Shown here piece after piece: positions 6,599 to 63,817 of a DNA stretch of 64,000 nucleotides. How positions within the stretch are numbered: position 1 is the first letter of the stretch; the number at the start of each line of letters is the position of its first letter. The position numbers and the translations under genes are program-made. The DNA comes from Oculina patagonica. Lineage: Eukaryota. The DNA lies in assembly GCF_052425735.1 (NCBI RefSeq), contig NC_135769.1, positions 20,150,001 to 20,214,000 on the forward strand, read 5' to 3'. A model generated the notes under the pieces. It was not told the origin of the DNA and ran no database searches. It worked only from the letters and a program-made list of their open reading frames with translations.

Positions 6599-7528
6599 AT
6601 GTCATCTTGCGAAGTGTTCGCGCAGCACTTTTTTGCATCTTCCGAAGTTGACAATGACTTCTATTCGACTTTCATCGCCAACTGCGTCTTTAACAATTTT
6701 CTATCTTATACCGCCATCACGTTGAACGTTTTAACAATCCACGCAATAAGAAAAACATCTTCGTTACCAATGCCGTTAAGAACATTGCTTCTCAGTCTTG
6801 CTGTTTCTGATGTCGGGGTTGGTTTAGTGGGCCAACCATTATACACCTCACTTCTAGTCGACGGGATTCAACGAAACATTACTGACTGTAACACGTATAA
6901 GGCTTTTGACATCCTTGTGGTCTTGTTTTCTATAGCTTCGTTCTTTACTGTTGTGACGATAAGTGTAGACAGGTTCTTAGCTATTCATCTTCATCTCAGA
7001 TATCAGGAACTTGTGACTCACAAGCGTGTTGTTGCTGTGGTGATCTCAATATGGGTGATAAGTCCGTTTTTGTCTTTGATGGCGTTGTGGATACCGCCTG
7101 ATACTCGCACGCTATTTGTCTGCATCGGTGATGTTGTTGGTCTCGTTCTTACAACAGTGGTTTACATCAGGATTTATTTAGCCGTAAAACGCCACAAGAA
7201 TCAGATTCAGGCCCTGCAAGTACAACAAGTAGCACAGAATGTCGAAATGGCAAATTTCGCAAGCCTCGTTAAATCTGCAGTCGGGACGTTTTACGTATAT
7301 CTCGTGTTTTTGGTTTGTTATTTTCCAATCTTTATCTGTTTTGCCGCCCTCCAAATCTACGGTCCGAGTATCGCTTTGCAGAGACTTTTGCTTTTTTTAG
7401 TGACTCTCGTTTTTCTTAATTCAACTTTGAACCCTGTAATTTACTGTTGGAAGATGAGACACATTCGACACGCTATCATGGACATACTGCGAAACATGTC
7501 TTGGATCAGAAATCGCGCATCACACTAA
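6599..7528 (+). CDS. G1: intronless class A (rhodopsin-like) orphan GPCR, type A
   Basis: 309 aa, 7 hydrophobic segments, LSLAVSD, SVDRF, CYFP and NSTLNPVIY. Confidence 0.92.
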   Translation: MSSCEVFAQHFFASSEVDNDFYSTFIANCVFNNFLSYTAITLNVLTIHAIRKTSSLPMPLRTLLLSLAVSDVGVGLVGQPLYTSLLVDGIQRNITDCNTYKAFDILVVLFSIASFFTVVTISVDRFLAIHLHLRYQELVTHKRVVAVVISIWVISPFLSLMALWIPPDTRTLFVCIGDVVGLVLTTVVYIRIYLAVKRHKNQIQALQVQQVAQNVEMANFASLVKSAVGTFYVYLVFLVCYFPIFICFAALQIYGPSIALQRLLLFLVTLVFLNSTLNPVIYCWKMRHIRHAIMDILRNMSWIRNRASH

Positions 7529-9192
7529 TCACAGAGCCGGCCATGCTATGCCAGAATTCTCCACATTCAGTGTTGTCGTTGCTGAAAAAAACCTTTTATA
7601 TATACTAAACAAGGACCGCGAGCAGTCTGAACATGAGCTGCAAGAGGACAAACGACAGCGTATTAAAACTAAGTAAAATATACTGAGGAAATATATATAT
7701 TGGGAACGAATTTTTATAGCTTAGTGATTTCTTGAACACTAAGTTCAGTGGCATTTTTGTGATTCCGAAAAAAATAAACAACACGCATTTAGAATGAATT
7801 AATTCCATATGCCAGAGGAACAAGAACATGTACGTTGACCTTTTTTAAATTAAAAAATTTACTCGTAGTGTTATTTATTGTCTTTTCAAATAAAGAATGT
7901 GGAAGCTAAAAGTGCGGAGCAAGCACGCTTTGGATTTGTTGTTCACTATTTAGCCATGACAGGGGAAAGGGGAACTAGAAACCATATTTGACAAATTTTT
8001 CAGGTTTTCATCGATAAGCATATAAAACGCTTTTTAATTATACCCATGTTGCGTTCTCTATATTTTTGGCTACTTTACAAAATTTCCGAGAAATGCTTTC
8101 TGTAAACAACTTTTAGATATAAGTAATATTTTCGATCAGTTTCCAAAAGCCTTATGATATTCGTTCCGAAGTTCTATTATAAAGATATTTTTTCTTATCA
8201 AAATATAACAATTCATCTCCTGTTTAATAAACAGTTTTCTTTAAGTCTCTATTTTGTCAGTGAGGTGCAAATGGTCTTATTAGAATCTTCTTCAATTCAC
8301 ATTTAATTTTATTTTACTCCATTCTCATAATGTCCTTCAAAAAACCTGAGCAGTTTTACATTTTTTCAACAAAGGACACAAATCACTTTTAAGCAAATAA
8401 CGAATTTCCGGTGACAAGAACGAACGAGCGAAAGAACGTGCCTCGAATTTTAAATCTATTCCTCGGTGTGCAATGATCAGCTTCATCACGTAATAATTTA
8501 ACAAACTGCAACGAAAAGCTAAGACTGTTAGTTTTTATTAAACAATTTCAATGACTATTCTAAGTGCTTTCCAAAGAAACAGGTCGAGTCTATCGATATC
8601 ATCTGACTTTACGTGACGTTTCCCGCGCTTAACTTCCCACCGGCGACATTTTAACTTAGGTTCTTATTCATTAATTACATTTTTCCCGGCCGCTCTTAAT
8701 CCTCGATTGTTCGGAAATACCCGGGCAACTTGACACTAGTAATTTACTGAAACAACAGAAAGGAAGAAATAAGGATTAACCTTGTTTGACCAAAGTTTCC
8801 AAGTTTACCTGCCATTAACATATATATAAAAACCTTTTCTGATAACTCCCTCGATTGTTTAATAAAACTGAGAATGACGCAAGCAGTCTGGGTTTTGACA
8901 GTTTTTGAAGTGCTCCTGGTATTATTTTTTAATTTAATTCATTTTTTCTGTTCTCTAGTTTCGTTTTTTCGATTCCCTGACAAAGAGCGTGAATTTTTTC
9001 CTTGGCGAACATCCAGAATACTGGAATACTTTACTGACTTCTTTAATTGAGGAATATGGCTTTAGTAGGTAGAAGAATCATTTTACCAAGTACTTCCTGG
9101 CGCCCTGTAAGGGAACCATCTTATAGCTTCAGCTTCCTAAGTCAATTTATATGACAAGCACTTGCTGCCTTAAAGAAACCCGAGTCGATATC

Positions 9193-10125
9193 ATGAATAA
9201 GTCATCTTGTAAATTGACGCTGCAGTACTATCCCGAAATCTCCGATGTTGAAGACCTTCATTCAACTTACATTGCTAATTGTGTCTTTAACAATTTGTTA
9301 TCCTATGTCGCCGTCATGTTCAACATTGTAACAATCCATGTTATAAGAAAAACTTCGTCGTTGCGGAAAACTTTAAAAACATTGCTCCTGAGTCTTGCCT
9401 TTTCTGATGTTGGTGTTGGTTTATTGGTTCAACCATTTTACACCTCACTTCTGATCACGTGGTTACAACAAAGCCTTCTCAGCTGTAGCACCTATAAGGT
9501 TTCCTTCGTCATTGGGCTGTTCTTTACTCTAGCTTCGTTCTTTGGTGTTGTGGCTGTTAGTGTAGACAGGTTTTTAGCTATTCATCTTCATCTCAGATAT
9601 CAGGAACTTGTGACTCACAAGCGTGTTGTTGCTGTGGTGATCTCAATATGGGCGTTAAGTGCATTATATTCTTCGATGCCGTTGTGGGTACCGTCCAACA
9701 TTCGCTCGGTATTAGTTTCCATTAGCACTGTTCTTGGTCTTCTTCTTACAACAGTGGCTTATATCAGAATTTATTTGGTCGTAAGACGCCACAAGAATCA
9801 GATTCAGACCCTGCAAGTACAACAAGTAGCACAAAATGACGAAATGATAAATTTTGCTAGCATCGTTAAATCTGCAGTCTGTACGTTTTACGTATATCTC
9901 GTGTATTTGGTTTGTTATTTGCCTACCTTTATTTATTGGGCGACCGTTGCGAACTACGACCCAAGTATCGCTTTGAAGCGATTTTTGCTTTTCGCGTTGA
10001 CTCTTGTATATCTTAATTCATCTTTGAACCCTGTAATTTACTGTTGGAAGATGAGACACATTCGACACGCTATCATGGACATACTGCGGAACATGTCTTG
10101 GTTCAGAAATCGCGCATCATACTAA
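9193..10125 (+). CDS. G2: class A orphan GPCR, type B (optional in-frame upstream ATG at 9151)
   Basis: 310 aa from the ATG conserved in paralogs (MNKSSC); 7TM motifs SVDRF, CYLP and NPVIY. Confidence 0.92.
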   Translation: MNKSSCKLTLQYYPEISDVEDLHSTYIANCVFNNLLSYVAVMFNIVTIHVIRKTSSLRKTLKTLLLSLAFSDVGVGLLVQPFYTSLLITWLQQSLLSCSTYKVSFVIGLFFTLASFFGVVAVSVDRFLAIHLHLRYQELVTHKRVVAVVISIWALSALYSSMPLWVPSNIRSVLVSISTVLGLLLTTVAYIRIYLVVRRHKNQIQTLQVQQVAQNDEMINFASIVKSAVCTFYVYLVYLVCYLPTFIYWATVANYDPSIALKRFLLFALTLVYLNSSLNPVIYCWKMRHIRHAIMDILRNMSWFRNRASY

Positions 10126-10436
10126 TCACAGGACCGCCATGCTATGCCAGGATTCTCCACATTCAGTGTTGTCGTTGCTGATTAAAACTTTCTATATAAT
10201 TTACAAGGACCGCGAGCAGTCTGAACATGAGCTGCCTGAGGACAAACGAAAGCGTATTAAAACTAAGTAAAATATACTGAAGAAATGTATATATACTAGG
10301 AAGGAATTTTTTTAGCTTAGTGATTTCTTGAACACACTAAATAACAGACATTTAGAATGAATTTATTCCATATGCCAGAGGAACAAGAACATGTACGTTT
10401 ACCTTTGTTAAATTAAAAAGTTTTACTTGTAGTGTT

Positions 10437-10479
10437 ACTGCGAAACATGTCTTGGCTAAAAAACCGTACATCACATTAA
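10437..10479 (+). pseudogene. Orphan 3' tail of a deleted G10-like GPCR
   Basis: Encodes LRNMSWLKNRTSH*, identical to the end of G10; followed by about 2 kb matching G10's downstream flank (50208-52330). Confidence 0.85.
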
Positions 10480-10633
10480 TTGGACCGAAATTGGAAAGCC
10501 GGCCATTCTATGCCAGGATTCTGACCACAATTTCAGTGTTGTCATTGTTGATAAACGCCTTCTTTGTGCAACATGTCAAACGAAGATCGTGAGCAGTTTA
10601 AACTTGGGCAAACGACAGCGTTTTAAAACTAAT

Positions 10634-15382: not shown

Positions 15383-16315
15383 ATGACATCTTGTGAAGTG
15401 TTCGCGCAGCACTTTAACTTTGCATCTTCTGAAGTTGACACTGACTTTTATTCGACTTTCATCGCCAACTGCGTCTTTAACAATTTTCTATCTTATACCG
15501 CCATCACGTTGAACGTTTTAACAATCCACGCGATAAGAAAAACATCTTCGTTACCAATGCCGTTAAGAACATTGCTTCTCAGTCTTGCTGTTTCTGATGT
15601 TGGGGTTGGTTTAGTGGGCCAACCACTATACACCTCACTTCTAGTCGACGGGATTCAACGAAACATTACTGACTGTAACACGTCTAAGGCTTTTGACATC
15701 CTTGTGGTCTTGTTTTCTGTAGCTTCGTTCTTTACTGTTGTGACGCTAAGTGTAGACAGGTTCTTAGCTATTCATCTTCATCTCAGATATCAGGAACTTG
15801 TGACTCACAAGCGTGTTGTTGCTATGGTGATCTCCATATGGGTGATAAGTCCGTTTTTGTCTCTGATGGCGTTGTGGATACCGCCTGATACTCGCACGCT
15901 ATTTGTCTGCATCGGTGATGTTATTGGTCTTGTTGTTACAGCAGTGGCTTACATCAGGATTTATTTAGCCGTGCGACGCCACAAGAATCAGATTCAGGCC
16001 CTGCAAGTACAACAAGTGGCACAGAATGACGAAATGGCAAATTTCGCTAGCCTCGTTAAATCTGCAGTCGGAACATTTTACGTATATCTCGTGTTTTTGA
16101 TTTGTTATTTACCAATCTTTATCTGTTTTGCCGCCCTTGAAATGTACGGCCCGAGTATCGCTTTGCAGAGACTTTTGCTTTTTTCAGTAACTCTCGTTTT
16201 TCTTAATTCATCTTTGAACCCTGTAATTTACTGTTGGAAGATGAGACACATTCGACGCGCTATCATGGACACACTGCGGAACATGTCTTGGTTCAGAAAT
16301 CGCGCATCACACTAA
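15383..16315 (+). CDS. G3: class A orphan GPCR, type A
   Basis: 310 aa intact ORF, very close to G1 and G5. Confidence 0.92.
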   Translation: MTSCEVFAQHFNFASSEVDTDFYSTFIANCVFNNFLSYTAITLNVLTIHAIRKTSSLPMPLRTLLLSLAVSDVGVGLVGQPLYTSLLVDGIQRNITDCNTSKAFDILVVLFSVASFFTVVTLSVDRFLAIHLHLRYQELVTHKRVVAMVISIWVISPFLSLMALWIPPDTRTLFVCIGDVIGLVVTAVAYIRIYLAVRRHKNQIQALQVQQVAQNDEMANFASLVKSAVGTFYVYLVFLICYLPIFICFAALEMYGPSIALQRLLLFSVTLVFLNSSLNPVIYCWKMRHIRRAIMDTLRNMSWFRNRASH

Positions 16316-17854: not shown

Positions 17855-18783
17855 ATGAATAAGTCATCTTGTAAATTGATGCTGCAGTACTACCCCGAAA
17901 TCTCCGATGCTGAAAACATTCATTCAACTTACATTGCTAATTGTGTCTTTAACAATTTGTTATCCTATCTCGCCATCATGTTGAACATTGTAACAATCCA
18001 TGTTAAAAGAAAAACTTCGTCGTTGACGAAAACTTTAAAAACATTGCTCCTGATTCTTGCTGTTTCTGATGTCGGTGTTGGTTTATTGGTTCAACCATTT
18101 TACACCTCACTTCTGATCACGTGGTTACAACAAAACTTTCCCAGCTGTAGCACCTATAAGGTTTTCTTCGTCATTGGGCTGTTCTTTAGTTTAGCTTCGT
18201 TCTTTGGTGTTGTGGCTGTAAGTGTAGACAGGTTCTTAGCTATTCATCTTCATCTCAGATATCAGGAACTTGTGACTCACAAGCGTGTTGTTGCTGTGGT
18301 GATCTTAATATGGGCGCTAAGTGTGGTATATTCTTCGATGCCGTTGTGGGTACCTTCAAATATTCGCTCGGCATTGCTATCCATTGGTACTGTTATTGGT
18401 CCTCTTCTTACAACTGTGGCTTACATCAAAATTCATTTGGTCGTTAGGCGCCACAAGATTCAGATTCAGGCCCTGCAAGTACAACAAGTAGCACAGACTG
18501 ACGAAATGGCAAATTTTGCTATCATCGTTAAATCTGCGGTCTGTGCGTTTTACGTATATCTCGTGTATTTATTTATTTACCAACCTTTATTTATTGGGCA
18601 ACCGTTGCGAACCACGACCCAAGTATCGCTTTGAAGCGATTTTTGCTTTTCGCGTTGACTCTTGTATATCTTAATTCATCTTTGAACCCTGTAATTTACT
18701 GTTGGAAAATGAGACACATTCGACACGCTATCATGGATATACTGCGGAACATGTCTTGGGTAAGAAATCGTGCATCACATTAA
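17855..18783 (+). pseudogene. G4: type B GPCR, frameshifted in TM6
   Basis: Short deletion near 18570 shifts the frame (stop at 18634); TM7 and NPVIY..RASH* persist out of frame to 18783. Confidence 0.85.
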
Positions 18784-22050: not shown

Positions 22051-22983
22051 ATGCCATCTTGTGAAGTGTTCGCGCAGCACTTTAACTTTGCATTTTCTGA
22101 AGTTGACACTGACTTCTATTCGACTTTCATCGCCAACTGCGTCTTTAACAATTTTCTATCTTATACCGCCATCACGTTGAACGTTTTAACAATCCACGCG
22201 ATAAGAAAAACATCTTCGTTACCAATGCCGTTAAGAACATTGCTTCTCAGTCTTGCTGTTTCTGATGTTGGGGTTGGTTTAGTGGGCCAACCACTATACA
22301 CCTCACTTCTAGTCGACGGGATACAAGGAAACATTACTAACTGTAACACGTCTAAGGCTTTTGACATACTTGTGGTCTTGTTTTCTGTAGCTTCGTTCTT
22401 TACTGTTGTGACGCTAAGTGTAGACAGGTTCTTAGCTATTCATCTTCATCTCAGATATCAGGAACTTGTGACTCACAAGCGTGTTGTTGCTGTGGTGATC
22501 TCAATATGGGTGATAAGTCCGTTTTTGTCTCTGATGGCGTTGTGGATACCGCCTGATACTCGCACGCTATTTGTCTGCATCGGTGATGTTATTGGTCTTG
22601 TTGTTACAGCAGTGGCTTACATCAGGATTTATTTAGCCGTGCGACGCCACAAGAATCAGATTCAGGCCCTGCAAGTACAACAAGTAGCACAGAATGACGA
22701 AATGGCAAATTTCGCTAGCCTCGTTAAATCTGCAGTCGGAACATTTTACGTATATCTCGTGTTTTTGATTTGTTATTTGCCAATCTTTATCTGTTTTGCC
22801 GCCCTTGAAATGTACGGTCCGAGTATCGCTTTGCAGAGACTTTTGCTTTTTTCAGTAACTCTCGTTTTTCTTAATTCATCCTTGAACCCTGTAATTTACT
22901 GTTGGAAGATGAGACACATTCGACACGCTATCATGGACACACTGCAGAACATGTCTTGGTTCAGAAATCGCGCATCACACTAA
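22051..22983 (+). CDS. G5: class A orphan GPCR, type A
   Basis: 310 aa intact ORF; differs from G3 at only a handful of residues. Confidence 0.92.
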   Translation: MPSCEVFAQHFNFAFSEVDTDFYSTFIANCVFNNFLSYTAITLNVLTIHAIRKTSSLPMPLRTLLLSLAVSDVGVGLVGQPLYTSLLVDGIQGNITNCNTSKAFDILVVLFSVASFFTVVTLSVDRFLAIHLHLRYQELVTHKRVVAVVISIWVISPFLSLMALWIPPDTRTLFVCIGDVIGLVVTAVAYIRIYLAVRRHKNQIQALQVQQVAQNDEMANFASLVKSAVGTFYVYLVFLICYLPIFICFAALEMYGPSIALQRLLLFSVTLVFLNSSLNPVIYCWKMRHIRHAIMDTLQNMSWFRNRASH

Positions 22984-26359: not shown

Positions 26360-27265
26360 ATGAATAAGTCATCTTGTAAATTGATGCTGCAGTACTACCC
26401 CGAAATCTCCGATGCTGAAGACCTTCATTCAACTTACATTGCTAATTGTGTCTTTAACAATTTGTTATCCTATGTCGCCATCATGTTGAACATTGTAACA
26501 ATCCATGTTATAGGAAAAACTTCGTCGTTGCCGAAAACTTTAAAAACATTGCCCCTGAGTCTTGCAGTTTCTGATGTTGGTGTTGGTTTATTGGTTCAAC
26601 CATTTTACATCTCACTTCTGATCTCGTGGTTACAACAAAGCCTTCCCAGCTGTAGCACCTATAAGGTTTTCTTCGTCATTGGGCTGTTCTTTAGTTTAGC
26701 TTCGTTCTTTGGTGTTGTGGCTATAAGTGTAGACAGGTTCTTAGCTGTTCACTTTCATCTCAGATATCAGGAACTTGTGACTCACAAGCGTGTTGTTGCT
26801 GTGGTGATTTCAATATGGGTGTTAAGTGCATTATATTCTTCGATGCCGTTGTGGGTACCGTCCAACATTCGCTCGGTATTAGTTTCCATTGGTACTGTTC
26901 TTGGTCTTCTTCTTACAACACTGGTTTACATCAGAATTTATTTGGTCGTAAGACGGCACAGGAATCAGATTCAGGCCCTGAAAATGGCACAGAATGGCGA
27001 AATGGCAAATTTTGCTGGCCTCATAAAATCTGCAGTCTGTACGTTTTACGTTTGTTATTTGCTTACCATTATCTATTGGGCAGCCCTTGCAAACTACGAC
27101 CCAAGTATCGCTTTGAAGAGAGTTTTGCTTTTCTCGTTGACTCTTATATATCTTAATTCATCTTTAAACCCTGTAATTTACTGTTGGAAGATGAGACACA
27201 TTCGGCACGCAATCATGGACATACTGCGGAACATTTCTTGGCTCAGAAATCGCGCATCACATTAA
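26360..27265 (+). CDS. G6: type B GPCR with in-frame deletions (possibly non-functional)
   Basis: 301 aa open ORF; lacks YLVYLV in TM6 and 3 aa in ICL3; L>P at the start of TM2. Confidence 0.75.
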   Translation: MNKSSCKLMLQYYPEISDAEDLHSTYIANCVFNNLLSYVAIMLNIVTIHVIGKTSSLPKTLKTLPLSLAVSDVGVGLLVQPFYISLLISWLQQSLPSCSTYKVFFVIGLFFSLASFFGVVAISVDRFLAVHFHLRYQELVTHKRVVAVVISIWVLSALYSSMPLWVPSNIRSVLVSIGTVLGLLLTTLVYIRIYLVVRRHRNQIQALKMAQNGEMANFAGLIKSAVCTFYVCYLLTIIYWAALANYDPSIALKRVLLFSLTLIYLNSSLNPVIYCWKMRHIRHAIMDILRNISWLRNRASH

Positions 27266-27413
27266 TCGTAGAGCCCGGGGGAAGGGGGGAGGTCGTAGAG
27301 CCGGCCATGCTGTGCCAGAATTCTCCACATTCAGTGTTGTCATTCTTGAAAAACGTCGTATATACTTACATATATAAGAAAGGCCGCCTCCGATAACATG
27401 AGGACGAGCTTAA

Positions 27414-27843: not shown

Positions 27844-27902
27844 TACAATACTGAAAAAGGATACAAATAGAATCGACATAGCTTTACTAAAATGAATATC
27901 TC

Positions 27903-28062
27903 CCAGCAAAATTTGCCATTTTGCCATTCTGTGCCATTTGCAGGGCCTGAATCTGATTCCTGTGCCGTCTTACGACCAAATAAATTCTGATGTAAACCAG
28001 TGTTGTAAGAAGAAGACCAAGAACAGTGCCAATGGAAACTAATACCGAGCGAATGTTGGACG
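27903..28062 (-). pseudogene. Inverted 160-bp fragment of a G6-type GPCR CDS (ECL2-TM5-ICL3)
   Basis: Reverse complement of 26859-27018, including the 9-bp ICL3 deletion seen in G6 and G13. Confidence 0.85.
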
Positions 28063-28260
28063 TCTGATATTATTTTTCTTCGGGATCCGTCAAAAATGCT
28101 ACTGAACTCAGTGCTTTAGAAATCAAGCTCACCTATAAAAATTCCTTCCTCGTATTTATGTTTCTTCAGTATTTTAACACCCAGTTTTTTAAAAGACGCT
28201 CTTATTTCCGCTTCAGCCCGAGCTCAGAGCGGTCCTTGTTATCAGTATGGAAATTGTTAA

Positions 28261-28831
28261 TTAGCAACAGCAACTCCGAAGGTGAGCATGGCCGGTCCTG
28301 TGTTTTGCGCAATTTCTGATCCAAGACATGTTCCGCAGTATGTCCATGATAGCGTATCGAATGTGTCTCATTTTCCAACAGTAAATTACAGGGTTCAAAG
28401 ATGAATTAAGAAATACGAGCGTGAAGGAAAATAGAAAAAATCTCTTCAAAGCGATACTCGGGCCTAGTTTTTTAAGGGAGGCCAAGCTGATAAAGTATGG
28501 CAAATAACAAGCCAAAAACACGAGAAATACGTAGAATATACCGACTGCAGATTTAACGATTATAGCAAAATTTGTCATTTCTTCAGTCTGTGCTACTTGT
28601 TGTACTTGCAGGGCCTGAATCTGATTCTTGTGGCGTCGCACGGCTGAATAAATCTTGATGTAATTAGAGCGAGACCAACAACTATTAAAATGCCATCAAA
28701 TTGGGAGCGAATATCGAGGGTAGCCCACCACAGCATTAGAGAAAGAAATACACTAAACACCCATATTAAGATCACTACAGCAACAACACGCTTGTCACAA
28801 GTTCCTGATATCTGAGATGAAGATGAATAGC
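28261..28831 (-). pseudogene. G7 3' half: GPCR pseudogene (5' end at 34174-34213)
   Basis: AIHLHLRYQELV..KRVVAVV through NPVIYCWKMRHIR; small frameshifting deletions and loss of the normal stop. Confidence 0.88.
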
Positions 28832-40682: not shown

Positions 40683-40828
40683 TATATAAATGTAGCTAAA
40701 ATCCGTGACACAGTCCCTTTAAGCTCGTCTTCATGTAATCAGAGATTACATATGTAAATATATAAGACGTTTATCAAGAATGACAGTGGAGAATTCTGGC
40801 AAAGCATTGCCGGCCCTACGGCGAAAAA

Positions 40829-40933
40829 GTGTGATATACGATTTCTGAACCAAGACTTGTTCCGCAGTATGTCCATGATAGCGTGTCGAATATGTCTCAT
40901 TTTCCAACAGTAAATTACAGGGTTCAAAGATGA
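40829..40933 (-). pseudogene. Orphan GPCR 3' tail (TM7-helix 8)
   Basis: SSLNPVIYCWKMRHIRHAIMDILRNKSWFRNRISH with no upstream CDS and no stop. Confidence 0.85.
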
Positions 40934-41710: not shown

Positions 41711-42646
41711 TTAGTGTGATGCTCGATTTCTGAGCCAAGACATGTTCCGCAGTATGTCCATGATAGCGTGTCGAATGTGTCTCATCTTCCAACAGTAAAT
41801 TACAGGGTTCAAGGATGAATTAAGAAATCCAAGAGTGCCTGCGAAAAAGATAAATTTCTTCAAAGTGATACTCGGGCCGTTGATTTCAGTGGCAGCCAAT
41901 GAGATAAAGTAAGGCAAATAACAAAGCAAAAACACGAGATATACGTAAAATATACTGACAGCAGATTTAACGAGGCTAGCAAAATGTGCCGTTTCCTTGG
42001 TCGACTGTGCTACTTGTTGTATTTGCAGGGCCTGAATATCATACTTGTGGCGTCGTACCGCTAAATAAATCCTGATGTAAACCAATGATGTAACAACGAC
42101 AAAACCAAATCCAAGAATGTATACAATAAGGGCCTTAATATCGGTCGGCACCCACACCATTAAAAAAGAAAGAAATACACTAAACACCCATATTGAGATC
42201 ACCTCAGCAACAACACGCTTGTGAGTCACAAGTTCCTGATATCTGAGATGAAGATGAATAGCTAAGAACCTGTCTACACTTACAGCCACAACACCAGAGA
42301 ACGAAGCTGTGAGAAAGAAATTCGTAATGATGTCAAAAGCCTTGTAAGTGGTACAGCCAGGATCGCTTTGTTGTAAACCTTTGACCATAAGTGAGGTAAA
42401 AAAAGGTTGAACCAATAAACCAACACCAACATCAGAAACAGCAAGACTCAGAAGCAATGTTTTTAAAGTCTTTGGCAACGACGAAGCTTTTCTCATCGCG
42501 TGGATTGTTACAATGTTCAACATGATAGCGGTATAGCATAGAAAACTGTTGAAGACACAAATTGTGATGAACGTCGAGTGGAGATCTTCATATTCTGATA
42601 CTCTTGGGTAGTACTGCAGCAACGCTTCACAAAATGATTTCTTCAT
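41711..42646 (-). CDS. G9: class A orphan GPCR
   Basis: 311 aa intact ORF with all family motifs. Confidence 0.92.
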   Translation of the reverse strand: MKKSFCEALLQYYPRVSEYEDLHSTFITICVFNSFLCYTAIMLNIVTIHAMRKASSLPKTLKTLLLSLAVSDVGVGLLVQPFFTSLMVKGLQQSDPGCTTYKAFDIITNFFLTASFSGVVAVSVDRFLAIHLHLRYQELVTHKRVVAEVISIWVFSVFLSFLMVWVPTDIKALIVYILGFGFVVVTSLVYIRIYLAVRRHKYDIQALQIQQVAQSTKETAHFASLVKSAVSIFYVYLVFLLCYLPYFISLAATEINGPSITLKKFIFFAGTLGFLNSSLNPVIYCWKMRHIRHAIMDILRNMSWLRNRASH

Positions 42647-45527: not shown

Positions 45528-46027
45528 NNNNNNNNNNNNNNNNNNNNNNNNNNNNNNNNNNNNNNNNNNNNNNNNNNNNNNNNNNNNNNNNNNNNNNNNN
45601 NNNNNNNNNNNNNNNNNNNNNNNNNNNNNNNNNNNNNNNNNNNNNNNNNNNNNNNNNNNNNNNNNNNNNNNNNNNNNNNNNNNNNNNNNNNNNNNNNNNN
45701 NNNNNNNNNNNNNNNNNNNNNNNNNNNNNNNNNNNNNNNNNNNNNNNNNNNNNNNNNNNNNNNNNNNNNNNNNNNNNNNNNNNNNNNNNNNNNNNNNNNN
45801 NNNNNNNNNNNNNNNNNNNNNNNNNNNNNNNNNNNNNNNNNNNNNNNNNNNNNNNNNNNNNNNNNNNNNNNNNNNNNNNNNNNNNNNNNNNNNNNNNNNN
45901 NNNNNNNNNNNNNNNNNNNNNNNNNNNNNNNNNNNNNNNNNNNNNNNNNNNNNNNNNNNNNNNNNNNNNNNNNNNNNNNNNNNNNNNNNNNNNNNNNNNN
46001 NNNNNNNNNNNNNNNNNNNNNNNNNNN
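45528..46027. other. Assembly gap (500 N)
   Basis: Run of exactly 500 N, likely a placeholder length. Confidence 0.99.
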
Positions 46028-46468: not shown

Positions 46469-46531
46469 ATGGAGAAATCATTTTGTAAACTGTTGCTGCA
46501 GTACTACCCAAGATTATCAGAATACGAAGAT
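46469..46531 (+). pseudogene. Orphan GPCR 5' head
   Basis: MEKSFCKLLLQYYPRLSEYED, then homology is lost abruptly. Confidence 0.85.
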
Positions 46532-49274: not shown

Positions 49275-50207
49275 ATGGATGAGTCATCTTGTGAATTGAT
49301 GCTGCAGTACTACCCCGAAATCTCCGATGTTGAAGACCTTCATTCATCTTTTATCGCTAATTGTGTCTTCAACAATTTTTTATCCTATACCACAATCATG
49401 TTGAACATTGTAACAATTCACACGATAAGAAAAACACCTTCGTTGCCAAAGACTTTAAAAACATTGCTCCTGAGTCTTGCTGTTTCTGATGTTGGCGTTG
49501 GTTTATTGGTTCAGCCATTTTACACCACACTTCTGGTCAAATGGTCACAACAAAGCATTCCTATCTGTAGCACCTATAAAGATTTCTTCGTCATTGCGCT
49601 ATTGTTTACTTTAGCTTCGTTCTTTGGCGTTGTGGCTGTAAGTGTAGACAGGTTCTTAGCTATTCATCTTCATCTCAGATATCAGGAACTTGTGACTCAC
49701 AAACGTGTTGTTGCTGTGGTGATCTCAATATGGGTGTTAAGTGCGCTATATTCTTCGATGCCGTTGTGGATACCTTCAAATATTCGCTCAGCATTGCTAT
49801 CCATTGGTACTGTTGTTGGTCTTCTTCTTACAACAGTGGCTTACATCAAAATTTATTTGGTCGTAAGACGGCACAGGAATCAGATTCAGACCCTGCAAGT
49901 ACAACAAGTAGCACAAAATGACGAAATGATAACTTTTGCTAGCATCGTTAAATCTGCAGTCTGTACGTTTTACGTATATCTCGTGTATTTGGTTTGTTAT
50001 TTGCCTACCTTTATTTATTGGGCGACCGTTGCGAACTACGACCCAAGTATCGCTTTGAAGCGATTTTTGCTTTTCTCGTTGACTCTTGTATATCTTAATT
50101 CATCTTTGAACCCTGTAATTTACTGTTGGAAGATGAGACACATTCGACACGCTATCATGGACATACTGCGAAACATGTCTTGGCTAAAAAACCGTACATC
50201 ACATTAA
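49275..50207 (+). CDS. G10: class A orphan GPCR (mosaic)
   Basis: 310 aa intact ORF with all family motifs. Confidence 0.92.
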   Translation: MDESSCELMLQYYPEISDVEDLHSSFIANCVFNNFLSYTTIMLNIVTIHTIRKTPSLPKTLKTLLLSLAVSDVGVGLLVQPFYTTLLVKWSQQSIPICSTYKDFFVIALLFTLASFFGVVAVSVDRFLAIHLHLRYQELVTHKRVVAVVISIWVLSALYSSMPLWIPSNIRSALLSIGTVVGLLLTTVAYIKIYLVVRRHRNQIQTLQVQQVAQNDEMITFASIVKSAVCTFYVYLVYLVCYLPTFIYWATVANYDPSIALKRFLLFSLTLVYLNSSLNPVIYCWKMRHIRHAIMDILRNMSWLKNRTSH

Positions 50208-56299: not shown

Positions 56300-57235
56300 A
56301 TGACGAAGAAATCATTTTGTGAACTGTTGCTGCAGTACTACCCCAGAATATCAGAATTTGAAGACCTCAAATCGACGTATATTGCTAATTGTGTCTTCAA
56401 CAGTTTTCTATGCTATACCGCCATCATGTTGAACATTGTAACAATCCACGCGATAAAAAAAACTTCGTCGTTGTCAAAGAGTTTAAAAACATTGCTACTG
56501 AGTCTTGCTGTTTCTGATGTTGGTGTTGGTTTATTGACTCAACCATTTTACACCTCACTTCTGGTCATGTGGTTACAACAAAACGATCCTGGCTGTAGCA
56601 CGTATAAGGTTTTTAGTGTCATTGCAAATTGTTTGTCCGCAGCTTCGTTCTTTGGTGTTGTGGCTGTAAGTGTAGACAGGTTCTTAGCTATTCATCTTCA
56701 TCTCAGATATCAGGAACTTGTGACTCACAAGCGTGTTGTTGCTGTAGTGATCTCAATATGGGTGTTTAGTGCATTTCTTTCTTTGTTAATGGTGTGGGTT
56801 TCGTTCGATGTTAAGGGTCTTATTGTATTTATTATTGTATTTGTTTTTGTTGTTGTTACAACACTGGTTTACATCAGGATTTATTTGGCCGTCCGACGCC
56901 ACAAGAATCAGATTCAGGCCCTGCAAGTACAACAAGTAGCACCGACTGACGAAATGGCAAATTTTTCGAGCCTAATTAAATTTGCAGTCGGTATATTCTA
57001 CGTATATCTCGTATTTTTAGCTTGTTATTTGCCATACTTTATCAGCTTGGCCTCCCTTAAAATACTAGGCCCGAGTATCGCTTTGAAGAGATTTTTTATT
57101 TTCTCTTTTACGCCTGTATTTCTTAATTCATCTTTGAACCCTGTAATTTACTGTTGGAAGATGAGACACATTCGACACGCTATCATGGACATACTGCGGA
57201 ACATGTCTTGGTTCAGAAATCGCGCATCACACTAA
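56300..57235 (+). CDS. G11: class A orphan GPCR (mosaic)
   Basis: 311 aa intact ORF with all family motifs. Confidence 0.92.
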   Translation: MTKKSFCELLLQYYPRISEFEDLKSTYIANCVFNSFLCYTAIMLNIVTIHAIKKTSSLSKSLKTLLLSLAVSDVGVGLLTQPFYTSLLVMWLQQNDPGCSTYKVFSVIANCLSAASFFGVVAVSVDRFLAIHLHLRYQELVTHKRVVAVVISIWVFSAFLSLLMVWVSFDVKGLIVFIIVFVFVVVTTLVYIRIYLAVRRHKNQIQALQVQQVAPTDEMANFSSLIKFAVGIFYVYLVFLACYLPYFISLASLKILGPSIALKRFFIFSFTPVFLNSSLNPVIYCWKMRHIRHAIMDILRNMSWFRNRASH

Positions 57236-57904
57236 TCGCAGGACCGGCCATACTATGCCATGATTCCTCACATTCGAAGATGCTTTTGCTTATAAACGAT
57301 TTTTTTATGTAACAAGGATCGGGAGTAGTCTGAGCTCGGACAGCAGCATGTCAAATAAGAGCGTTCTAAAACTAAGTAATATAATACTGAAAAATATATA
57401 TACTAGGAAGGGATTTATGTAGCTTAGCTTGATTTCTAAAACATTGAGTCCAGTAACATTTTTGTGATTCCGAAGAAAATTAAAAATAAATAACAGCATT
57501 AGGAATTAAGTTACCCCATATATACACAATCCGCACACCAATTTCGATCCCTTTATTACAACGCTCGAGATAACCCGAGGCCGGTAACATGGCACAACCC
57601 TGGAAAACAGCAAAAACTGAGGAGGAACTACCCCGGGAAAGCTTCTTTGACAGATGTTTTCAGGCTTTGCCTTCGATAAACCTTTTAAAACGCTTTTTAA
57701 ATAAAGGTTTCCGGTTTTTTCATTTGTCATTGTAAAAATGAAAATTGTCATGAAATGTTTTCATATCTGACGTTTTTATATCCGAACCCATTAGCTTCAA
57801 TGGCGTCCGTCGTCTCCATCATCTTTTCATCATTTATCCATTTTCATGGTGGCTTTGTTAAAGTTTTGTTTTATTTGTCTTTAATTTAATCCTGTCAGTT
57901 ATAT

Positions 57905-58739
57905 TTGTGAACTGTTGCCGCAGTTCTACCCTCAGAATATCAGAATATTAAGATCTCCACTTGACGTTTATTGTAAATTGTGTATTTAAAAATTGTCTAT
58001 GCTTTACCGCTATCGTGTTGAACATTGTTACAATCCACTGCTCCTGAGTCTTGCTGTTTCTGATGTTGGTGTATTTTTATTGCATGGTCCAACCATTTTA
58101 CATCTCACTTCTGGTTAAGTGGTCACAACAAAGCATTCCCAGCTGTAGCACATATAAGGTTTTTCTTAATTTTTCGGTTTTGCTTGCAACTGCTTAGATC
58201 TCTGGTTTTGTGGCTGTAAGTGTAGACAGGTTCTTAGCTATTTATCTTCATCTCAGATATCAGAAACTTGTGACTCACAAGCGTGTTGTTGCTGTAGTGA
58301 TCTCAATATGGGTGTGGATTTTCTTCTTTAATACCGTTGTGGGCTCCGCCCAATGTTCGCACCATATTTCTATACATCATTATAGCCGTTCGACAGCACA
58401 AAAATCAGATTCAGGCCCTGCAAGTACATCAAGTAGCACAGACTGACGAAATGTCAAATTTTGCGAGCCTCGTTAAATTTGCAGTCGGTATATCATACGT
58501 TTATCTCGTGTTTTTGCTTCCATATTATCCTTAAGTGACCTGTTTGGTCGCCATTTAAAAATTCAATGGCCCAAATATCGCTTTGAAGAGATTTTATTTT
58601 TTCTCAACTACGCTTCTTTGTCTTAATTCATCTTTGAACCTTATAATTTACTGTTGGAAGATGAGACACATTCGACACGCTATCATGGACATACTGCGGA
58701 ATATGTCTTGGATCACTGAGAAATCGCGCATCAAACTAA
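57905..58739 (+). pseudogene. G12: heavily decayed GPCR pseudogene
   Basis: No ATG; multiple indels and stops; retains LSLAVSD, SVDRFLAIYLHLRYQKLVTHKR and YCWKMRHIRHAIMD. Confidence 0.88.
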
Positions 58740-59981
58740 CGGCAGGGCAAGCCATGCTCTGCCAGAATTCTCCATATTTAGTGTTACTGTTGCTGATAGA
58801 CAGCTTCTGTATATTACAAAGACTACAAGCAGTCGGTACTCGGGCTGCATGAGGTCTAAGGAAAGCGTATTTTAATCTGAGTTATATATGGCCGACGAAA
58901 TAATACTCTGAAGACATTCATATTGCTTATAAACTGACTTCGAAGGTAGTTTCATGATGAAAATAAGTAATTTGGGTTACTGGGACAGGGAATCACAAAC
59001 AAAACAATGGGAATGAGACTGGGATTTTGGCAAATCTAGGGCTGAAAAATGAGATTTACACCCATCTCCCCCCCCCCCCCCCTTTCGGGCCCTCTAGACT
59101 ATGTTTAAAAACATAAGCAAAATGAAACACAATAAAAATCAAATCAAATAAAGACTTTAATAAAGCCACTATCTCGCTGCAATAAATGACAAAACCAAGT
59201 CTTAATGAAAATTGTTCAGGTTAATTAGACAAAAAATCTAAACATCTGTAAGTGTTGGCACATTTGATATTCGGTACGGTATTATACGGAACCTCAAACG
59301 AATGAAGATCAGTTAATTGATTGAGGCAACAATTTTAGGCAATTTGTTTTTGCAAATAAAACGTTGACCCAGGAAGTATTTCATGACAATTCCCTTCCTG
59401 ACAACAAACCCGGAACCATTTAATTAAAAAAAGCTTTTTTAAAGGTTAATCAATTATAATTGATGACAAAGTCTGAAAACATCTGTCAAAGAATGTTTTC
59501 CCAAATTAGTTCCTCTTCATTTTTTTTGTTTCAGAAAGTTATAAAAGCTACGCTTCCGGCCTCTGGTATTCTCGAGCAATATTTCGCCGGGGAAAGGGCT
59601 TGGTAAATTTTGCGTAAGCAAACGAAAGGGGAAAATACTGCTTTTTGTATAATCCCTTTGGACTTTGGAGAGAACTGTCCTAATTAATCGTCTTTTACGC
59701 TGTCATGACTAAACAGTGAACAACAAATCTAACTCGTTTACGTTCTGCGCTTTCGTCTTCCACTTTATTTATAATCATACAAAAAACACTCACTGTGAAT
59801 AAAATTGTTTTTTATTTGAAAAAGCGAACCAAATTTTCTCATTCTTTTTCATTTTGAGTTATGGCGTAAATACCATTTTCCAAGTGAAAAAAATAGGCAA
59901 ATCTCAGATCCCATGTTACCCTTTCAGGCCCCTCTAGCTAAGTGGCTTTTTGAAAAAGGCCTATTTGGGTTTTTTAATGAT

Positions 59982-61680: not shown

Positions 61681-61815
61681 AATGCTATTTAATTATACCT
61701 ATGTTATGTTATCTATATTTTTAGCTATTTTAGAAAAAATCCGTAAAATGCTTTCTGTTTACAACTTTTATATATAATTAGGTGAAAACGTATTTTCGAT
61801 CAATCTCCCAAAGCC

Positions 61816-61885: not shown

Positions 61886-62879
61886 CCCAAAGCCTTTTGA
61901 TTTTCATTTCGAAGTTCTATTATAAAGATAATTTTACTTATCAAAATATAACAAATTTATCTCCTGTTTAATAATTAAATCGTTTTCATTAAGTCTTTAT
62001 TTTGTCAGTGAGGTGCAAATGGTCTTATTAGAATCTTCGTCAATTCTCATTTAATTTTATTTTACTCCATTCTCATAATGTCCTTCAAAAAACCTGGGCT
62101 TTTACGCCTTTTTCAACAAAGAGCACAAATCACTTCTGAGCAAATAACGAATTTCGGGCGACAAGAACCAACGAGGGAAAGAACGTGCCTTGAATTTTAA
62201 ATGTCTATTCCTCGGTGTACAATTATCACCTTCATCACGTAATAATTTAACAAACTGCAACGAAGAGCTAAGAATGTTTGTTTTTATTAAACAATTTCAA
62301 TGACAATTCTAAGTGCTTTCCAAAGAAACAAGTTGAGTCTATCGATAGCATCTGGCTTCACGTGACGTTTTTAACTTTCCACTGGCTACATTTTAACTTC
62401 AGTTTTTATTCATTTATTACATGTTTCCCTCTCTTAATCCTCAAACGTTCGGGAGGGTTTAACCTCGTTTGACCGACGTTTCTAAGTTTACCAGCCATTA
62501 ACATATATATAAAAACCTTTTCTGATAACTCCCTCGATTGTTTAATAAAACTGAGAATGACGCAAGCAGTCTGGGTTATGACAGTTTTGAAGTGCTCCTG
62601 GTATTATTTTTTAATTTAATTCATTTTTTTCCGTTCTCTAGTTTCGTTTTTTTCGATTCCCTGACAAAGAGCGTGATTTTTTTCCTTGGCGAACATCCAG
62701 AATACTGCAATACTTTACTGACTTCGTTAACTGAGGATCATCGCTTTAGTAGGTAGAAAAATCATTTTTACCAAGTACTTCCTGGCGCCCTATAAGGGAA
62801 CCATCTTAGCTTCAGCTTCCTAAGTAAATTTATATGACAAGCACTTGCTGCCTGAAAGAAACCTGATTGAGTCGATATC

Positions 62880-63817
62880 ATGAATAAGTCATCTTGTAAA
62901 TTGATGCTGCAGTACTACCCCGAAATCTCCGATGTTGAAGACCTTCATTCAACTTACATTGCTAATTGTGTCTTTAACAATTTGTTATCCTATGTCGCCA
63001 TCATGTTGAACATTGTAACAATCCATGTTATAAGAAAAACTTCGTCGTTGCCGAAAACTTTAAAAACATTGCTCCTGAGTCTTGTTGTTTTTGATGTTGG
63101 TGTTGGTTTATTGGTTCAGCCATTTTACACCTCACTTCTGATCACGTGGTTAGAACAAAGCCTTCCCAGCTGTAGCATCTATAAGGTTTTCTTCGTCATT
63201 GGGCTGTTCTTTAGTTTAGCTTCGTTCTTTGGTGTTGTGGCTGTAAGTGTAGACAGGTTTTAAGCTATTCATCTTCATCTCAGATGTCAGGAACGTGTGA
63301 CTCACAAGCGTGTTGTTGCTGTGGTGATCTCAATATGGGCGTTAAGTGGATTGTATTCTTCGATCCCGTTGTGGGTACCGTCCAACATTCGCTCGGTATT
63401 AGTTTCCATTGGCACTGTTCTTGGTCTTCCTTTTACAACGAATTAACAGTGGCTTATTTCAGAATTTATTTGGTCGTAAGACGGCACAGGAATCAGATTC
63501 AGGTCCTGCGAGTGGCACAGAATGGCGAAATGGCAAATTTTGCTGGCCTCATAAAATCTGCAGTCTGTACGTTTTACGTATATCTCGTGTATTTGGTTTG
63601 TTATTTGCCTACTATTATCTATTGGGCATGCGCAGCCCTTGCAAACTACGAACCAAGTATCGCTTTGAAGAGAGTTTTGCTTTTCTCGTTGACTGGTGTA
63701 TGTCTTAATTCGTCTCTGGACCCTGTAATTTACTGTTGGAAGATGAGACACATTCGGCACGCAATTATGGACATACTGCGGAACATTTCTTGGCTCAGAA
63801 ATCGCGCATCACATTAA
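62880..63817 (+). pseudogene. G13: type B GPCR pseudogene
   Basis: Premature TAA right after SVDRF (63261-63263), further indels and NP>DP in TM7; the C-terminus RASH* is still present. Confidence 0.88.

Follow-up and report, generated by a model that had tools for sequence, protein, structure and literature searches.

How does a tandem array of receptor genes keep short stretches of coding DNA almost constant, silent positions included, while the segments between them differ from gene to gene? The question is raised by a 64,000-nucleotide stretch of an Oculina patagonica chromosome (contig C12), referred to below as the window, whose positions are used throughout. For this stretch the initial annotation proposed that exchange at constant blocks builds new ligand pockets on a fixed signalling chassis, and counted 13 coding sequences. 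Searches with tblastn and blastn did locate 13 gene-length copies of an intronless class-A GPCR at these places; nine of them are intact and four (G4, G7, G12 and G13) are broken (Table 1). Four small receptor fragments were additionally found in the window. The one behind G2 is followed by approximately 760 more bases of the G10 3' flank at 97.8% identity, and this duplicated tail looks like a relic of unequal exchange. No receptor homology was detected in the 500 bases preceding the run of N, and no CDS relies on continuity across it, although it could hide further copies. G6 is possibly non-functional despite its open reading frame.

Table 1. Receptor copies, fragments, assembly gap and conserved blocks in the window. 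Codon numbering follows G8, the coordinate reference.
Feature	Position	Strand	Description
G1	6599..7528	+	intact 309-aa class-A GPCR
B1 in G1	6782..6814	+	cytoplasmic half of TM2, LAVSD motif; G8 codons 63-73
B2 in G1	6962..7057	+	TM3 end with DRF, ICL2, TM4 start; G8 codons 123-154
B2 core in G1	6983..7036	+	54 nt; G8 codons 130-147; I H L H L R Y Q E L V T H K R V V A
B3 in G1	7196..7237	+	TM5 end and ICL3; G8 codons 201-214
B4 in G1	7415..7504	+	NPVIY and helix 8; G8 codons 274-303
G2	9193..10125	+	intact ORF; 324 aa if started at the upstream ATG (9151)
Fragment	10436..10479	+	identical to final 44 CDS bases of G10
G3	15383..16315	+	intact 310 aa
G4	17855..18783	+	pseudogene, frameshift near codon 240 from 4-nt deletion
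G5	22051..22983	+	intact 310 aa
G6	26360..27265	+	open 301-aa ORF; two in-frame deletions, 9 nt in ICL3 and 18 nt in TM6
Fragment	27903..28062	-	160 nt, 98% identical to G6 nt 500-659
G7	28261..28831	-	5'-truncated pseudogene, 3' two thirds only
G8	36204..37136	-	intact 310 aa
Fragment	40791..40933	-	B4-region 3' end; matches G11 at 94% over 106 nt
G9	41711..42646	-	intact 311 aa
Assembly gap (N run)	45528..46027	.	AT-rich intergenic DNA between G9 and G10
Fragment	46469..46531	+	first 21 codons of a receptor (63 nt, 5' end); starts 441 bases past gap
G10	49275..50207	+	intact 310 aa
G11	56300..57235	+	intact 311 aa
G12	57904..58794	+	old pseudogene; 4 in-frame stops and indels
G13	62880..63817	+	pseudogene; 1 in-frame stop inside B2, 8-nt insertion, other indels

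Matches to the Pfam model 7tm_1 scored 94-101 bits (E=1.2e-26 for G1). Database relatives numbered 6643, including named ones from Oculina and Orbicella, and pseudogenes accounted for 20 of 57 sampled loci, about a third. The best explanation is a coral-specific family of intronless class-A GPCRs with at least 150 copies in the genome. In corals, the rhodopsin-like GPCR is the commonest domain in tandem-amplified families (34 of 192 amplified orthogroups; PMC10236652), and the O. patagonica array is one such family. The olfactory, vomeronasal and taste receptor clusters of vertebrates are likewise large tandem arrays of intronless class-A receptors of ~310 aa; they too are rich in pseudogenes, turn over by birth and death, and vary in the outward-facing halves of the helices. 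However, the Pfam olfactory model matches the coral receptors weakly and over TM1-TM4 only, and the olfactory signature motifs are absent; the two do not belong to the same family. Occasional gene conversion has been reported in vertebrate chemosensory clusters, for which we know of no description of interleaved blocks conserved at silent sites.

Alignment of the window copies placed the four blocks where the initial annotation had them. Compared in pairs, the 13 copies had a mean DNA identity of 92.5% in B1, 95.0% in B2, 90.9% in B3 and 95.6% in B4, vs 71-79% in the four segments between the blocks; "nearly identical" overstates the case for B1 and B3. Silent positions follow the same pattern, as had been claimed. 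In the window, mean codon difference at amino-acid-invariant codons was 0.064 in the blocks vs 0.185 outside (Mann-Whitney p=0.0036). Across 36 intact genes, synonymous difference was 0.357 outside the blocks, 0.076 in B2, 0.10 in B4 and ~0.17 in B1 and B3. Restricting the measure in these genes to codons for at least four-fold degenerate residues gave 0.28 outside the blocks, 0.067 in B2 (p=3.5e-6), 0.114 in B4 (p=0.002), 0.149 in B1 (p=0.017) and 0.125 in B3 (p=0.04). Two protein-conserved stretches outside the blocks served as internal controls: codons 22-36 (pN 0.12-0.16) still had pS of 0.55-0.59, and codons 190-201 (pN ~0.11) still had 0.37-0.41. The contrast in codon difference also remained without CpG contexts (0.261 vs 0.122), and no rise of GC3 was seen in the blocks (0.38-0.45 vs 0.405). 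The blocks stay near consensus even in the old pseudogene G12, where 19 of 170 near-invariant sites were changed outside them vs 4 of 195 inside; over the pseudogenes, 2.6% of B2 was changed vs 4.4% at other formerly constrained sites. Block sequence is present in RNA libraries.

Trees of the four variable segments proved incongruent, again as the initial annotation had expected: when cross-tested, 12 of 12 AU tests rejected (p<=0.004, delta lnL 124-382), far beyond pseudo-segments of permuted codons, for which the same measure averaged 58 and reached at most 145. Clear mosaics have parts 95-98% identical to different donors. The clearest in the window is G10, with codons 1-73 close to G8 (95%), 74-178 to G4 (92%) and 179-310 to G2 (96%). 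G2 itself resembles G13 over codons 1-181 and G10 over codons 181-297 (6 mismatches in 349 nt), G4 follows G6 over codons 1-118 and G10 in the remainder, and the first ~50 codons of G8 match G10, although the two lie on opposite strands. A gene beyond the window consists of G11-type codons 1-122 fused, within B2, to codons 122-310 of the G1 type. Recombination among the copies is strong and real. The independent assortment of versions that had been claimed is visible for G2, G4, G6, G8, G10 and G13 only. G1, G3 and G5 form a simple duplicate group, in which G3 covers the whole of G1 in the painting analysis and differs from G5 at 15 of 930 nt, and G9, G11 and G12 have no partner within the window (a protein copy of G9, 96% identical, lies ~83 kb downstream, beyond it).

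As to where exchange takes place, a greedy breakpoint search, which also responds to rate shifts, ranked codons 125-150 first, followed by 185-195, 60-75 and 270-285; the best-supported breakpoints thus fall in B2 (the top plateau), near codon 185, in B1 and in B4. Single switch points, however, are neither confined to the blocks nor enriched there: with the caveats of the painting analysis, their relative rate in blocks was 0.16 and most lay outside. The blocks are therefore not demonstrated as start sites of exchange.

Whether conversion also made the blocks alike is a separate matter, on which the blocks differ. In B4, cluster genes had a codon difference of 0.072 among themselves and of 0.264 to other corals, with 0.25-0.37 inside the other coral samples, and pS in Orbicella (0.29-0.38) was near neutral, matching a single-copy PITP gene at 0.30. 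At Cys284 in B4 every gene of the cluster has TGT, and 83% of other corals have TGC. This likeness within the cluster, set against near-neutral divergence from other corals, looks like the product of local gene conversion. B3, the weakest block (0.098 within the cluster, 0.183 against other corals), was probably homogenised in the same way, though less clearly. For comparison, the same-residue codon difference was 0.147 and 0.171, respectively, in B1, and 0.245 and 0.32 outside the blocks. Conversion as the source of block identity, as initially proposed, consequently suits B4 and less clearly B3, but fails for the core of B2, which is conserved across chromosomes and genera.

Within B2, 93 bases reached at least 98% identity at 40 places scored out of 208 candidates. 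A 34-mer of its core occurs exactly at 85 places on at least six chromosomes, and with up to two mismatches at 152 places on C1, C2, C3, C10, C11, C12 and C1209. Orbicella (n=3 genes) shows one synonymous difference in ~22 sites over the whole of B2, vs pS 0.30 in the PITP gene, and the within-species and between-genus values of B2 are equal (0.076 vs 0.08). In Porites (n=4 partial genes) a 35-mer of the core is present with 1-3 mismatches, and codon difference in the core was 0.18 vs 0.51; B1 is not conserved there (0.425). Contigs from other coral organisms matched on the blocks only, which also fits extra constraint. It should be added that both of these samples are small and that the 66 metagenome genes were selected by peptides in B2 and B4. 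Since other chromosomes, Orbicella and Porites all keep these codons, silent identity of the B2 core does not derive from conversion within the array; on this evidence some constraint at nucleotide level is needed, and conversion cannot explain it.

We consider it probable that the array reflects a tandem family shaped by ectopic recombination, by purifying selection on the cytoplasmic face and by an extra nucleotide constraint on the B2 and B4 cores. The family would have grown by tandem duplication with frequent gene death. Ectopic recombination between copies, mainly gene conversion and also between oppositely oriented neighbours, with some unequal exchange leaving relics, would repeatedly have moved segments between genes, giving four to five outward-facing segments different histories and new combinations. 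The same process may have homogenised B4, and probably B3, within clusters of the C12 chromosome. The protein blocks would be held constant by purifying selection acting on the parts that face the cytoplasm (TM2 LAVSD, DRF-ICL2-TM4 and NPVIY-helix 8), and the added constraint, on the 54-nt B2 core and ~30 nt of B4, would be common to chromosomes, genera and both sides of the Robusta/Complexa divide.

A close known parallel is offered by clustered protocadherins, whose variable exons undergo region-restricted gene conversion in fish and mammals (PMC1852091; review PMC3966226, citing Noonan et al. 2004). There, too, tandem receptor genes have one part of the CDS homogenised among paralogues, silent sites included, the diversity-bearing part remains divergent, and homogenisation is lineage-specific, a feature that B4 shares. 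Unlike the single long 3' region of protocadherins, the coral genes, which encode GPCRs and not cadherins, have variable segments alternating with four short blocks of 33-96 nt, and conversion does not predict a B2 core kept between genera and on other chromosomes. Several observations sit uneasily with the preferred explanation. Repeated conversion raised GC3 in fish protocadherins (PMC1852091), unlike in the coral blocks. Only one near-fixed silent difference sets the cluster apart from other corals. B4 is homogeneous over at least 2.5 Mb, a long distance for ectopic conversion, and a survey of coral tandem arrays found gene conversion to be very rare (PMC10236652), in contrast to the strong segment incongruence and local homogenisation of this family.

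The absence of a GC3 rise would also suit a different account, in which all four blocks are functional nucleic-acid elements within the CDS (targets of small RNAs or RNA-binding proteins, or exonic regulatory DNA), with silent identity due to selection alone and recombination not causal. It gains from the silent sites of the B2 and B4 cores, kept across chromosomes and genera and in Porites, and from the equal within-species and between-genus values of B2. Cnidarian miRNAs are reported to work through near-full complementarity (PMC3975064, PMC11811051), which makes targets in coding sequence plausible. Nevertheless we judge this account unlikely, because B4 outside its ~30-nt core is near neutral relative to Orbicella and other corals and yet homogeneous within the cluster; B3 behaves similarly, if more weakly, and family-wide constraint does not predict such a pattern. 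Moreover, 54-96 nt is long for a single small-RNA site, and searches of the blocks for a matching small RNA, a hairpin, an Rfam family or a local fold were negative.

Silent-site conservation of B1 and of the B2 core could have a common cause in a long-range RNA (or DNA) helix between them. The predicted duplex has 25 base pairs in 33 nt and dG of -28.7 kcal/mol, whereas the mean for random synonymous recodings of these peptides is -11.7 (sd 3.5), with 0.03% of them reaching the observed value. It ranks best or second-best within G9 and G8, is the main long-range feature in an RNAalifold prediction from 33 diverse genes and reaches -20 or lower in 77 of 108 genes. But the pair was chosen post hoc among 10 block pairs and covariation is absent (term -0.33, only two compensated cells), variants mostly breaking pairs, as does the change from TAT to TAC that 23 of 77 haplotypes carry at codon 136. 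In Porites, furthermore, the B2 core is still conserved although B1 has diverged, and the duplex there does not exceed null level (-12 to -14). We regard such a helix as quite improbable.

Mosaic genes, conserved block DNA and the share of pseudogenes with near-consensus blocks (about a third of loci) could also be read as signs of programmed somatic diversification, as in chicken antibody genes or lamprey VLRs, with neighbouring genes and pseudogenes serving as templates to rewrite complete genes and the blocks acting as homology anchors. This is very unlikely, as every mosaic seen is germline assembly sequence, the 2-8% divergence from donors indicates old and not somatic events, and the genes are complete ORFs instead of incomplete germline genes. 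We give least credence to an artefact of chimeric assembly of near-identical repeats, or of mis-alignment inflating variable-region divergence: the family is highly repetitive and the window holds an assembly gap, but this gap is intergenic, the same blocks and variable segments recur in Orbicella, Porites, an ENA assembly and JGI contigs (independent assemblies and metagenomes), mosaic parts are 2-8% different from their donors and not identical, and the contrast persists when restricted to codons with identical residues.

What the constrained stretch might do can be approached by analogy with plant NLR families, which are co-regulated by miR482/2118 through the conserved P-loop coding sequence. 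Both are large receptor families that evolve fast and in which most members have a short piece of coding sequence in common, and such a stretch could let one small RNA reach the whole family; the coral stretch, unlike that of the NLRs, exceeds one target site, and the search for small RNAs complementary to the blocks yielded none. For the proteins, the proposed division into a constant cytoplasmic face and variable outer parts holds: pN/pS is 0.15-0.38 in the four blocks vs 0.63-0.83 in the variable parts, which correspond to outward-facing helix halves and loops, with helix boundaries taken from a low-confidence model and motifs. The receptors may sense external ligands, in a putative chemosensory or self/non-self role such as the initial annotation proposed, and selection may favour new combinations of the pocket.

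The stretch, at C12:20150001-20214000 in the genome, holds 13 gene-length copies (G1-G13) of an intronless receptor gene of about 310 codons, detected by six-frame ORF search and by tblastn with intact products, and four short receptor fragments scattered amid retrotransposon remains. Nine copies are open (G1, G2, G3, G5, G6, G8, G9, G10 and G11; G6 in spite of two in-frame deletions) and four are broken: G4 by a frameshift, G7 by truncation of its 5' end, G12 by several stops and indels, and G13 by an insertion and a stop inside block B2. Products matched Pfam 7tm_1 (PF00001) at 94-102 bits (G1 94.2, G8 101.5; cut-off 30.5). The class-A motif set tested comprised D2.50 in LAxxD, E/DRY, W4.50, CWxP and NPxxY, and was found to be kept family-wide as LAVSD, DRF (variant), W153, CYLP (variant) and NPVIY. 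Assignment to vertebrate-type olfactory receptors (PF13853) was rejected, as the match is partial (residues about 39-159, E 8e-8 to 5e-10) and lies below that of 7tm_1; the olfactory motifs MAYDRYVAIC, KAFSTCxSH and PMLNPxIY are absent from the translations of the copies. The NCBI names (adenosine, melanocortin and adrenergic receptor) vary from copy to copy within one family and therefore reflect best-hit naming.

An AlphaFold2 model of low confidence (mean pLDDT 54), computed from a 10-sequence alignment, places helices at 16-53, 59-94 (kinked), 100-135, 140-165, 168-210, 216-255 and 259-309. In a 10-protein alignment from several corals, two cysteines are invariant (G8 numbering): Cys6, within the N-terminal tail, and Cys98, at the outer end of TM3. 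ECL2 (loop 166-167) spans just a few residues, and the cysteine usual there is missing; these features suggest that a disulfide from the N-terminus to TM3 may replace the canonical TM3-ECL2 bridge.

Aligning the 13 copies as DNA placed four near-constant blocks (B1-B4) where the initial annotation had put them, with mean pairwise identity of 71-79% in the four segments between. Their topology was read from motif positions and the low-confidence structure model, in which codons 88-114, 155-186 and 244-270 (G8 coordinates) are predicted to form outward helix halves and extracellular loops, in agreement with the earlier proposal that the variable parts face outward. In these three stretches pN/pS is 0.63-0.83, versus 0.15-0.38 in the four blocks.

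Features of the stretch and related loci (window coordinates unless a contig is given)
Feature	Position	Strand	Remarks
Block B1	6782-6814 in G1	+	mean pairwise identity 92.5%; cytoplasmic half of TM2 (LAVSD)
Block B2	6962-7057 in G1	+	95.0%; DRF end of TM3, ICL2, start of TM4
Block B3	7196-7237 in G1	+	90.9%; end of TM5 and ICL3
Block B4	7415-7504 in G1	+	95.6%; NPVIY and helix 8
Second G10-tail copy	about 10436-11190	+	begins 311 bases past the G2 stop
Non-LTR retrotransposon remains	1602-4390	+	array flank
Non-LTR retrotransposon remains	52562-54376	-	array flank
215-aa ORF	23808-24455	-	weak GIY-YIG match
215-aa ORF	24737-25384	+	weak GIY-YIG match
G6 and truncated pseudogene G7	26360-28920	+ (G6), - (G7)	tail to tail, about 1 kb apart
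ORF run between G7 and G8	29124-33315	+	ORFs of 100-167 aa, GC-richer (0.43-0.45)
Run of N	45528-46027		AT-rich intergenic DNA; no receptor homology touching the run
PITP orthologue of Oculina	G000:C12:24838001-24848000		same chromosome as the array
Further dense family clusters, C12	31.74-31.86, 32.95-32.98 and 33.23-33.29 Mb		marked by the exact B2-core 34-mer
Further dense family cluster, C1	26.98-27.02 Mb		marked by the exact B2-core 34-mer
Further dense family clusters, C3	5.42-5.45 and 6.17-6.19 Mb		marked by the exact B2-core 34-mer

The blocks are alike at silent sites too, as had been noticed: in the window, residue-invariant codons differ in 6.4% of pairs inside the blocks vs 18.5% outside (p=0.0036). 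The sample was widened by 200 kb of the same chromosome, which added 28 intact ORFs and brought the loci to 57, including 20 pseudogenes; 36 intact Oculina genes, spanning 264 kb, were used for the Nei-Gojobori estimates, and all distances are uncorrected proportions. pS is not uniform along the coding sequence. Protein-conserved stretches outside the blocks, such as codons 22-36 (pN 0.12-0.16, pS 0.55-0.59) and 190-201 (pN about 0.11, pS 0.37-0.41), keep high pS, and the low pS of the blocks thus cannot be ascribed to protein constraint alone. Nor is a CpG effect the source of the higher silent change outside the blocks, which without CpG contexts still amounts to 0.261 vs 0.122. A signature of GC-biased conversion was sought through GC3 and none was seen, the blocks not being raised.

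Recombination among the copies was traced with maximum-likelihood trees of the four variable segments from 34 genes of the cluster, i.e. the family members of this chromosome region, including the additional 200 kb. The trees are incongruent, as the initial annotation implied, with all 12 cross-tests rejecting (AU p<=0.004, delta lnL 124-382; control with permuted-codon pseudo-segments, mean 58, maximum 145), and the farther apart two segments lie in the gene, the stronger the incongruence. In a greedy search for breakpoints, a plateau at codons 125-150, corresponding to B2, came first, followed by codons 185-195, codons 60-75 (B1), codons 270-285 (start of B4) and several weaker breakpoints, all still passing AIC. 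The expectation of breakpoints at the constant blocks was thus borne out for B2, B1 and the start of B4, but not for the second-ranked codons 185-195, nor by copying-model painting, where the majority of switch points fall outside the blocks (relative rate in blocks 0.16) and cluster at codons 178-188; painting places switches only where sites differ and is therefore unreliable for diverged donors, and no conclusion is built on its result, which has the opposite sign to block enrichment.

Individual mosaics are evident. According to the painting, G10 is G8-like over codons 1-73 (95%), then G4-like (92%) and then G2-like (96%), the 3' 349 bases of G2 and G10 being 98% identical, and the donor of G4 changes at the B2 edge. 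In a gene lying 30 kb outside the window, a 5' half of G11 type and a 3' half of G1 type meet within B2. Because G8 and G10 lie on opposite strands, their exchange is to be attributed to conversion and not to simple unequal crossover. The second G10-tail copy, behind G2, starts with the final 44 bases of the coding sequence and continues into the G10 3' flank for about 760 bases (97.8% identity); it is a putative relic of unequal exchange or partial duplication. Independent assortment of segment versions, claimed for the array at large, holds for six genes in the window and not for the remaining ones. As these data show, the evolution of a tandem array in corals can proceed through exchange of modules, and not by duplication and point mutation alone. 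Somatic assembly or rewriting of the VLR or chicken Ig type is disfavoured: it would call for incomplete germline genes, and nine of the 13 copies are complete ORFs.

Among the 20 pseudogenes, sites that hardly vary in the intact genes were changed in 4.4% of cases outside the blocks vs 2.6% in B2, a comparison confounded by subfamily divergence and the alignment of truncated ends; in the old pseudogene G12 the counts were 19/170 outside vs 4/195 inside. The pattern fits, suggestively, with continued overwriting of the blocks by conversion.

Comparison with other corals separated two kinds of block. It was based on three genes of Orbicella faveolata and three from an ENA assembly, on 66 intact genes from coral metagenome contigs, retrieved with degenerate peptide patterns, which avoid any preselection of codons, and on four partial genes of Porites evermanni and P. 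lobata; both the Orbicella and the Porites set are small, the latter with partial gene models.

Silent-site measures by region: pS (Nei-Gojobori) of 36 intact Oculina genes; p for block vs outside at codons of residues with at least fourfold degeneracy; GC3; and same-residue codon difference in four comparisons
Region	pS	p	GC3	Within Oculina cluster	Cluster vs other corals	Within other coral samples	Porites vs cluster
Outside blocks	0.357		0.405	0.245	0.32	~0.33-0.41	0.51
B1	0.165	0.017	0.26	0.147	0.171	0.14-0.23	0.43
B2	0.076	3.5e-6	0.38	0.054	0.139	0.16-0.28	0.28
B2 core (codons 130-147)				0.029	~0.08	0.09-0.17	0.18
B3	0.178	0.04	0.44	0.098	0.183	0.13-0.30	0.29
B4	0.100	0.002	0.445	0.072	0.264	0.25-0.37	0.33

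As a neutral yardstick, the single-copy phosphatidylinositol-transfer-protein (PITP) gene gave pS 0.30 between Orbicella and Oculina, with 69-76% identity in alignable intron patches. By this yardstick Orbicella B4 is neutral (pS 0.29-0.38), and in Orbicella B2 a single silent difference was counted over about 22 sites (P about 0.003-0.004). Similarity within the cluster combined with ordinary divergence elsewhere, clear in B4 and less so in B3, is the signature of local concerted evolution: paralogues are closer to one another than to copies of other species in B4 (0.072 vs 0.264) and, more weakly, in B3 (0.098 vs 0.183). The clearest single site is Cys284, encoded by TGT in all cluster genes and by TGC in 83% of those from other corals.

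Conversion restricted to the region was rejected for the B2 core, a 54-nt stretch inside B2, because the core is equally conserved between genera. In the Oculina genome its 34-mer occurs exactly at 85 places, and at 152 with up to two mismatches, spread over contigs C1, C2, C3, C10, C11 and C12 and an unplaced contig. Fifteen family genes of other genome regions, chosen by this 34-mer, hence biased for the core and used just to show its spread, have a protein identity to the cluster of just 58-76%. It should be added that the genes at 31.8 and 32.98 Mb of C12, the contig carrying the array, form a subfamily of their own (about 60% protein identity), which has the silent sites of B1 and B2 in common with the cluster, and not those of B3 and B4.

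Among stony corals, Porites falls in the other major clade. A 35-mer of the B2 core was found again there with 1-3 mismatches, the core DNA being 85-94% identical to the Oculina consensus vs 55-62% for the rest of the gene, and the B4 core (~30 nt) is likewise conserved (codon difference 0.09). If conversion homogenises a neutral stretch, differences between species should still build up there at the neutral rate, and conversion therefore cannot explain the B2 and B4 cores. The proposal that exchange within the array produced the silent identity of the blocks consequently fails for the B2 core, which is kept on other chromosomes, in Orbicella and in Porites. Contigs of other coral organisms, from three RNA libraries and one DNA library, map to G1 and G2 at the blocks only, which fits cross-taxon conservation; block sequence is present as contigs in RNA libraries of other corals, and such presence does not equal transcription.

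On a reading that we put forward tentatively and consider rather improbable, the B2 and B4 cores would be a cis-acting nucleic-acid element within coding sequence, on which selection would act as DNA or RNA in 150 or more paralogues of each genome and on both sides of the deepest divide among stony corals. In one version, a small RNA or an RNA-binding protein would use the element to reach the family as a whole, which, if true, would allow joint regulation of the whole repertoire, or choice among receptors, comparable to the control of plant NLR families by a miRNA that targets a conserved motif. Local folding of the blocks, examined on either strand, was unremarkable (z-scores -0.6 to +0.8), no Rfam family reached its gathering threshold anywhere in the window, and nowhere else in the genome does B1 or B2-core sequence supply the arms (12 nt, exact) of a hairpin. 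In 8.4 million papers, a substring search for published small RNAs that are reverse complements of B1 or the B2 core yielded chance primer matches alone.

A helix between B1 and the B2 core could account for the silent-site conservation. The two stretches can pair at 25 positions in 33 nt (-28.7 kcal/mol); when the peptides are recoded with random synonymous codons the mean is -11.7, with 0.03% reaching the observed value, and RNAalifold predicts the helix from 33 diverse genes. However, covariation is absent and common variants break pairs, and in Porites the B2 core is still conserved, yet B1 has diverged and pairing of the two is at null level. For these reasons the helix was demoted to a minor rival explanation.

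Traces of mobile elements lie among the receptor genes and on the flanks of the array. The retrotransposon remains on these flanks comprise an endonuclease/exonuclease/phosphatase domain and then reverse-transcriptase-like ORFs, with a separate RVT_1 fragment. The two 215-aa ORFs differ by one residue and point away from one another with about 280 bases between; they look like an inverted pair of a Penelope-like element. The ORF run between G7 and G8 is probably a decayed mobile element, and a Pfam scan of two of its ORFs returned no match. Between G6 and G7 sits a 160-nt G6-like fragment, and read-through transcription of this pair would yield a long imperfect inverted repeat with the constant blocks best paired. 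On Orbicella contig MZGG01001771.1 the PITP gene adjoins a family member, and in Oculina its orthologue and the array share a chromosome, which hints at a PITP-receptor linkage conserved between Orbicella and Oculina. The Orbicella gene has a repeat of ~200 nt upstream that recurs on Oculina chromosomes in hundreds of copies (86-88% identity).

In coral families amplified by tandem duplication, the domain met most often is that of rhodopsin-like GPCRs, and gene conversion was judged very rare in coral tandem families (PMC10236652); the module exchange described here runs against that rarity. In clustered protocadherins a single region of tandem receptor genes is homogenised, silent sites included (PMC1852091; PMC3966226). 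The coral family resembles them in that homogenisation is region-limited and extends to silent sites, and differs in its interleaved block pattern; it is a fresh instance of protocadherin-type homogenisation. An added feature, of which no description was found in the literature, is the conservation of coding cores at silent sites across the whole order.

Corals carry many orphan GPCR expansions, with possible roles in settlement cues, symbiont or microbe sensing and self-recognition. The 54-nt stretch offers a ready target for probes or primers with which the family can be retrieved from any stony coral, and as a concrete, testable oddity of coding sequence it could mark a regulatory layer over the whole receptor repertoire.
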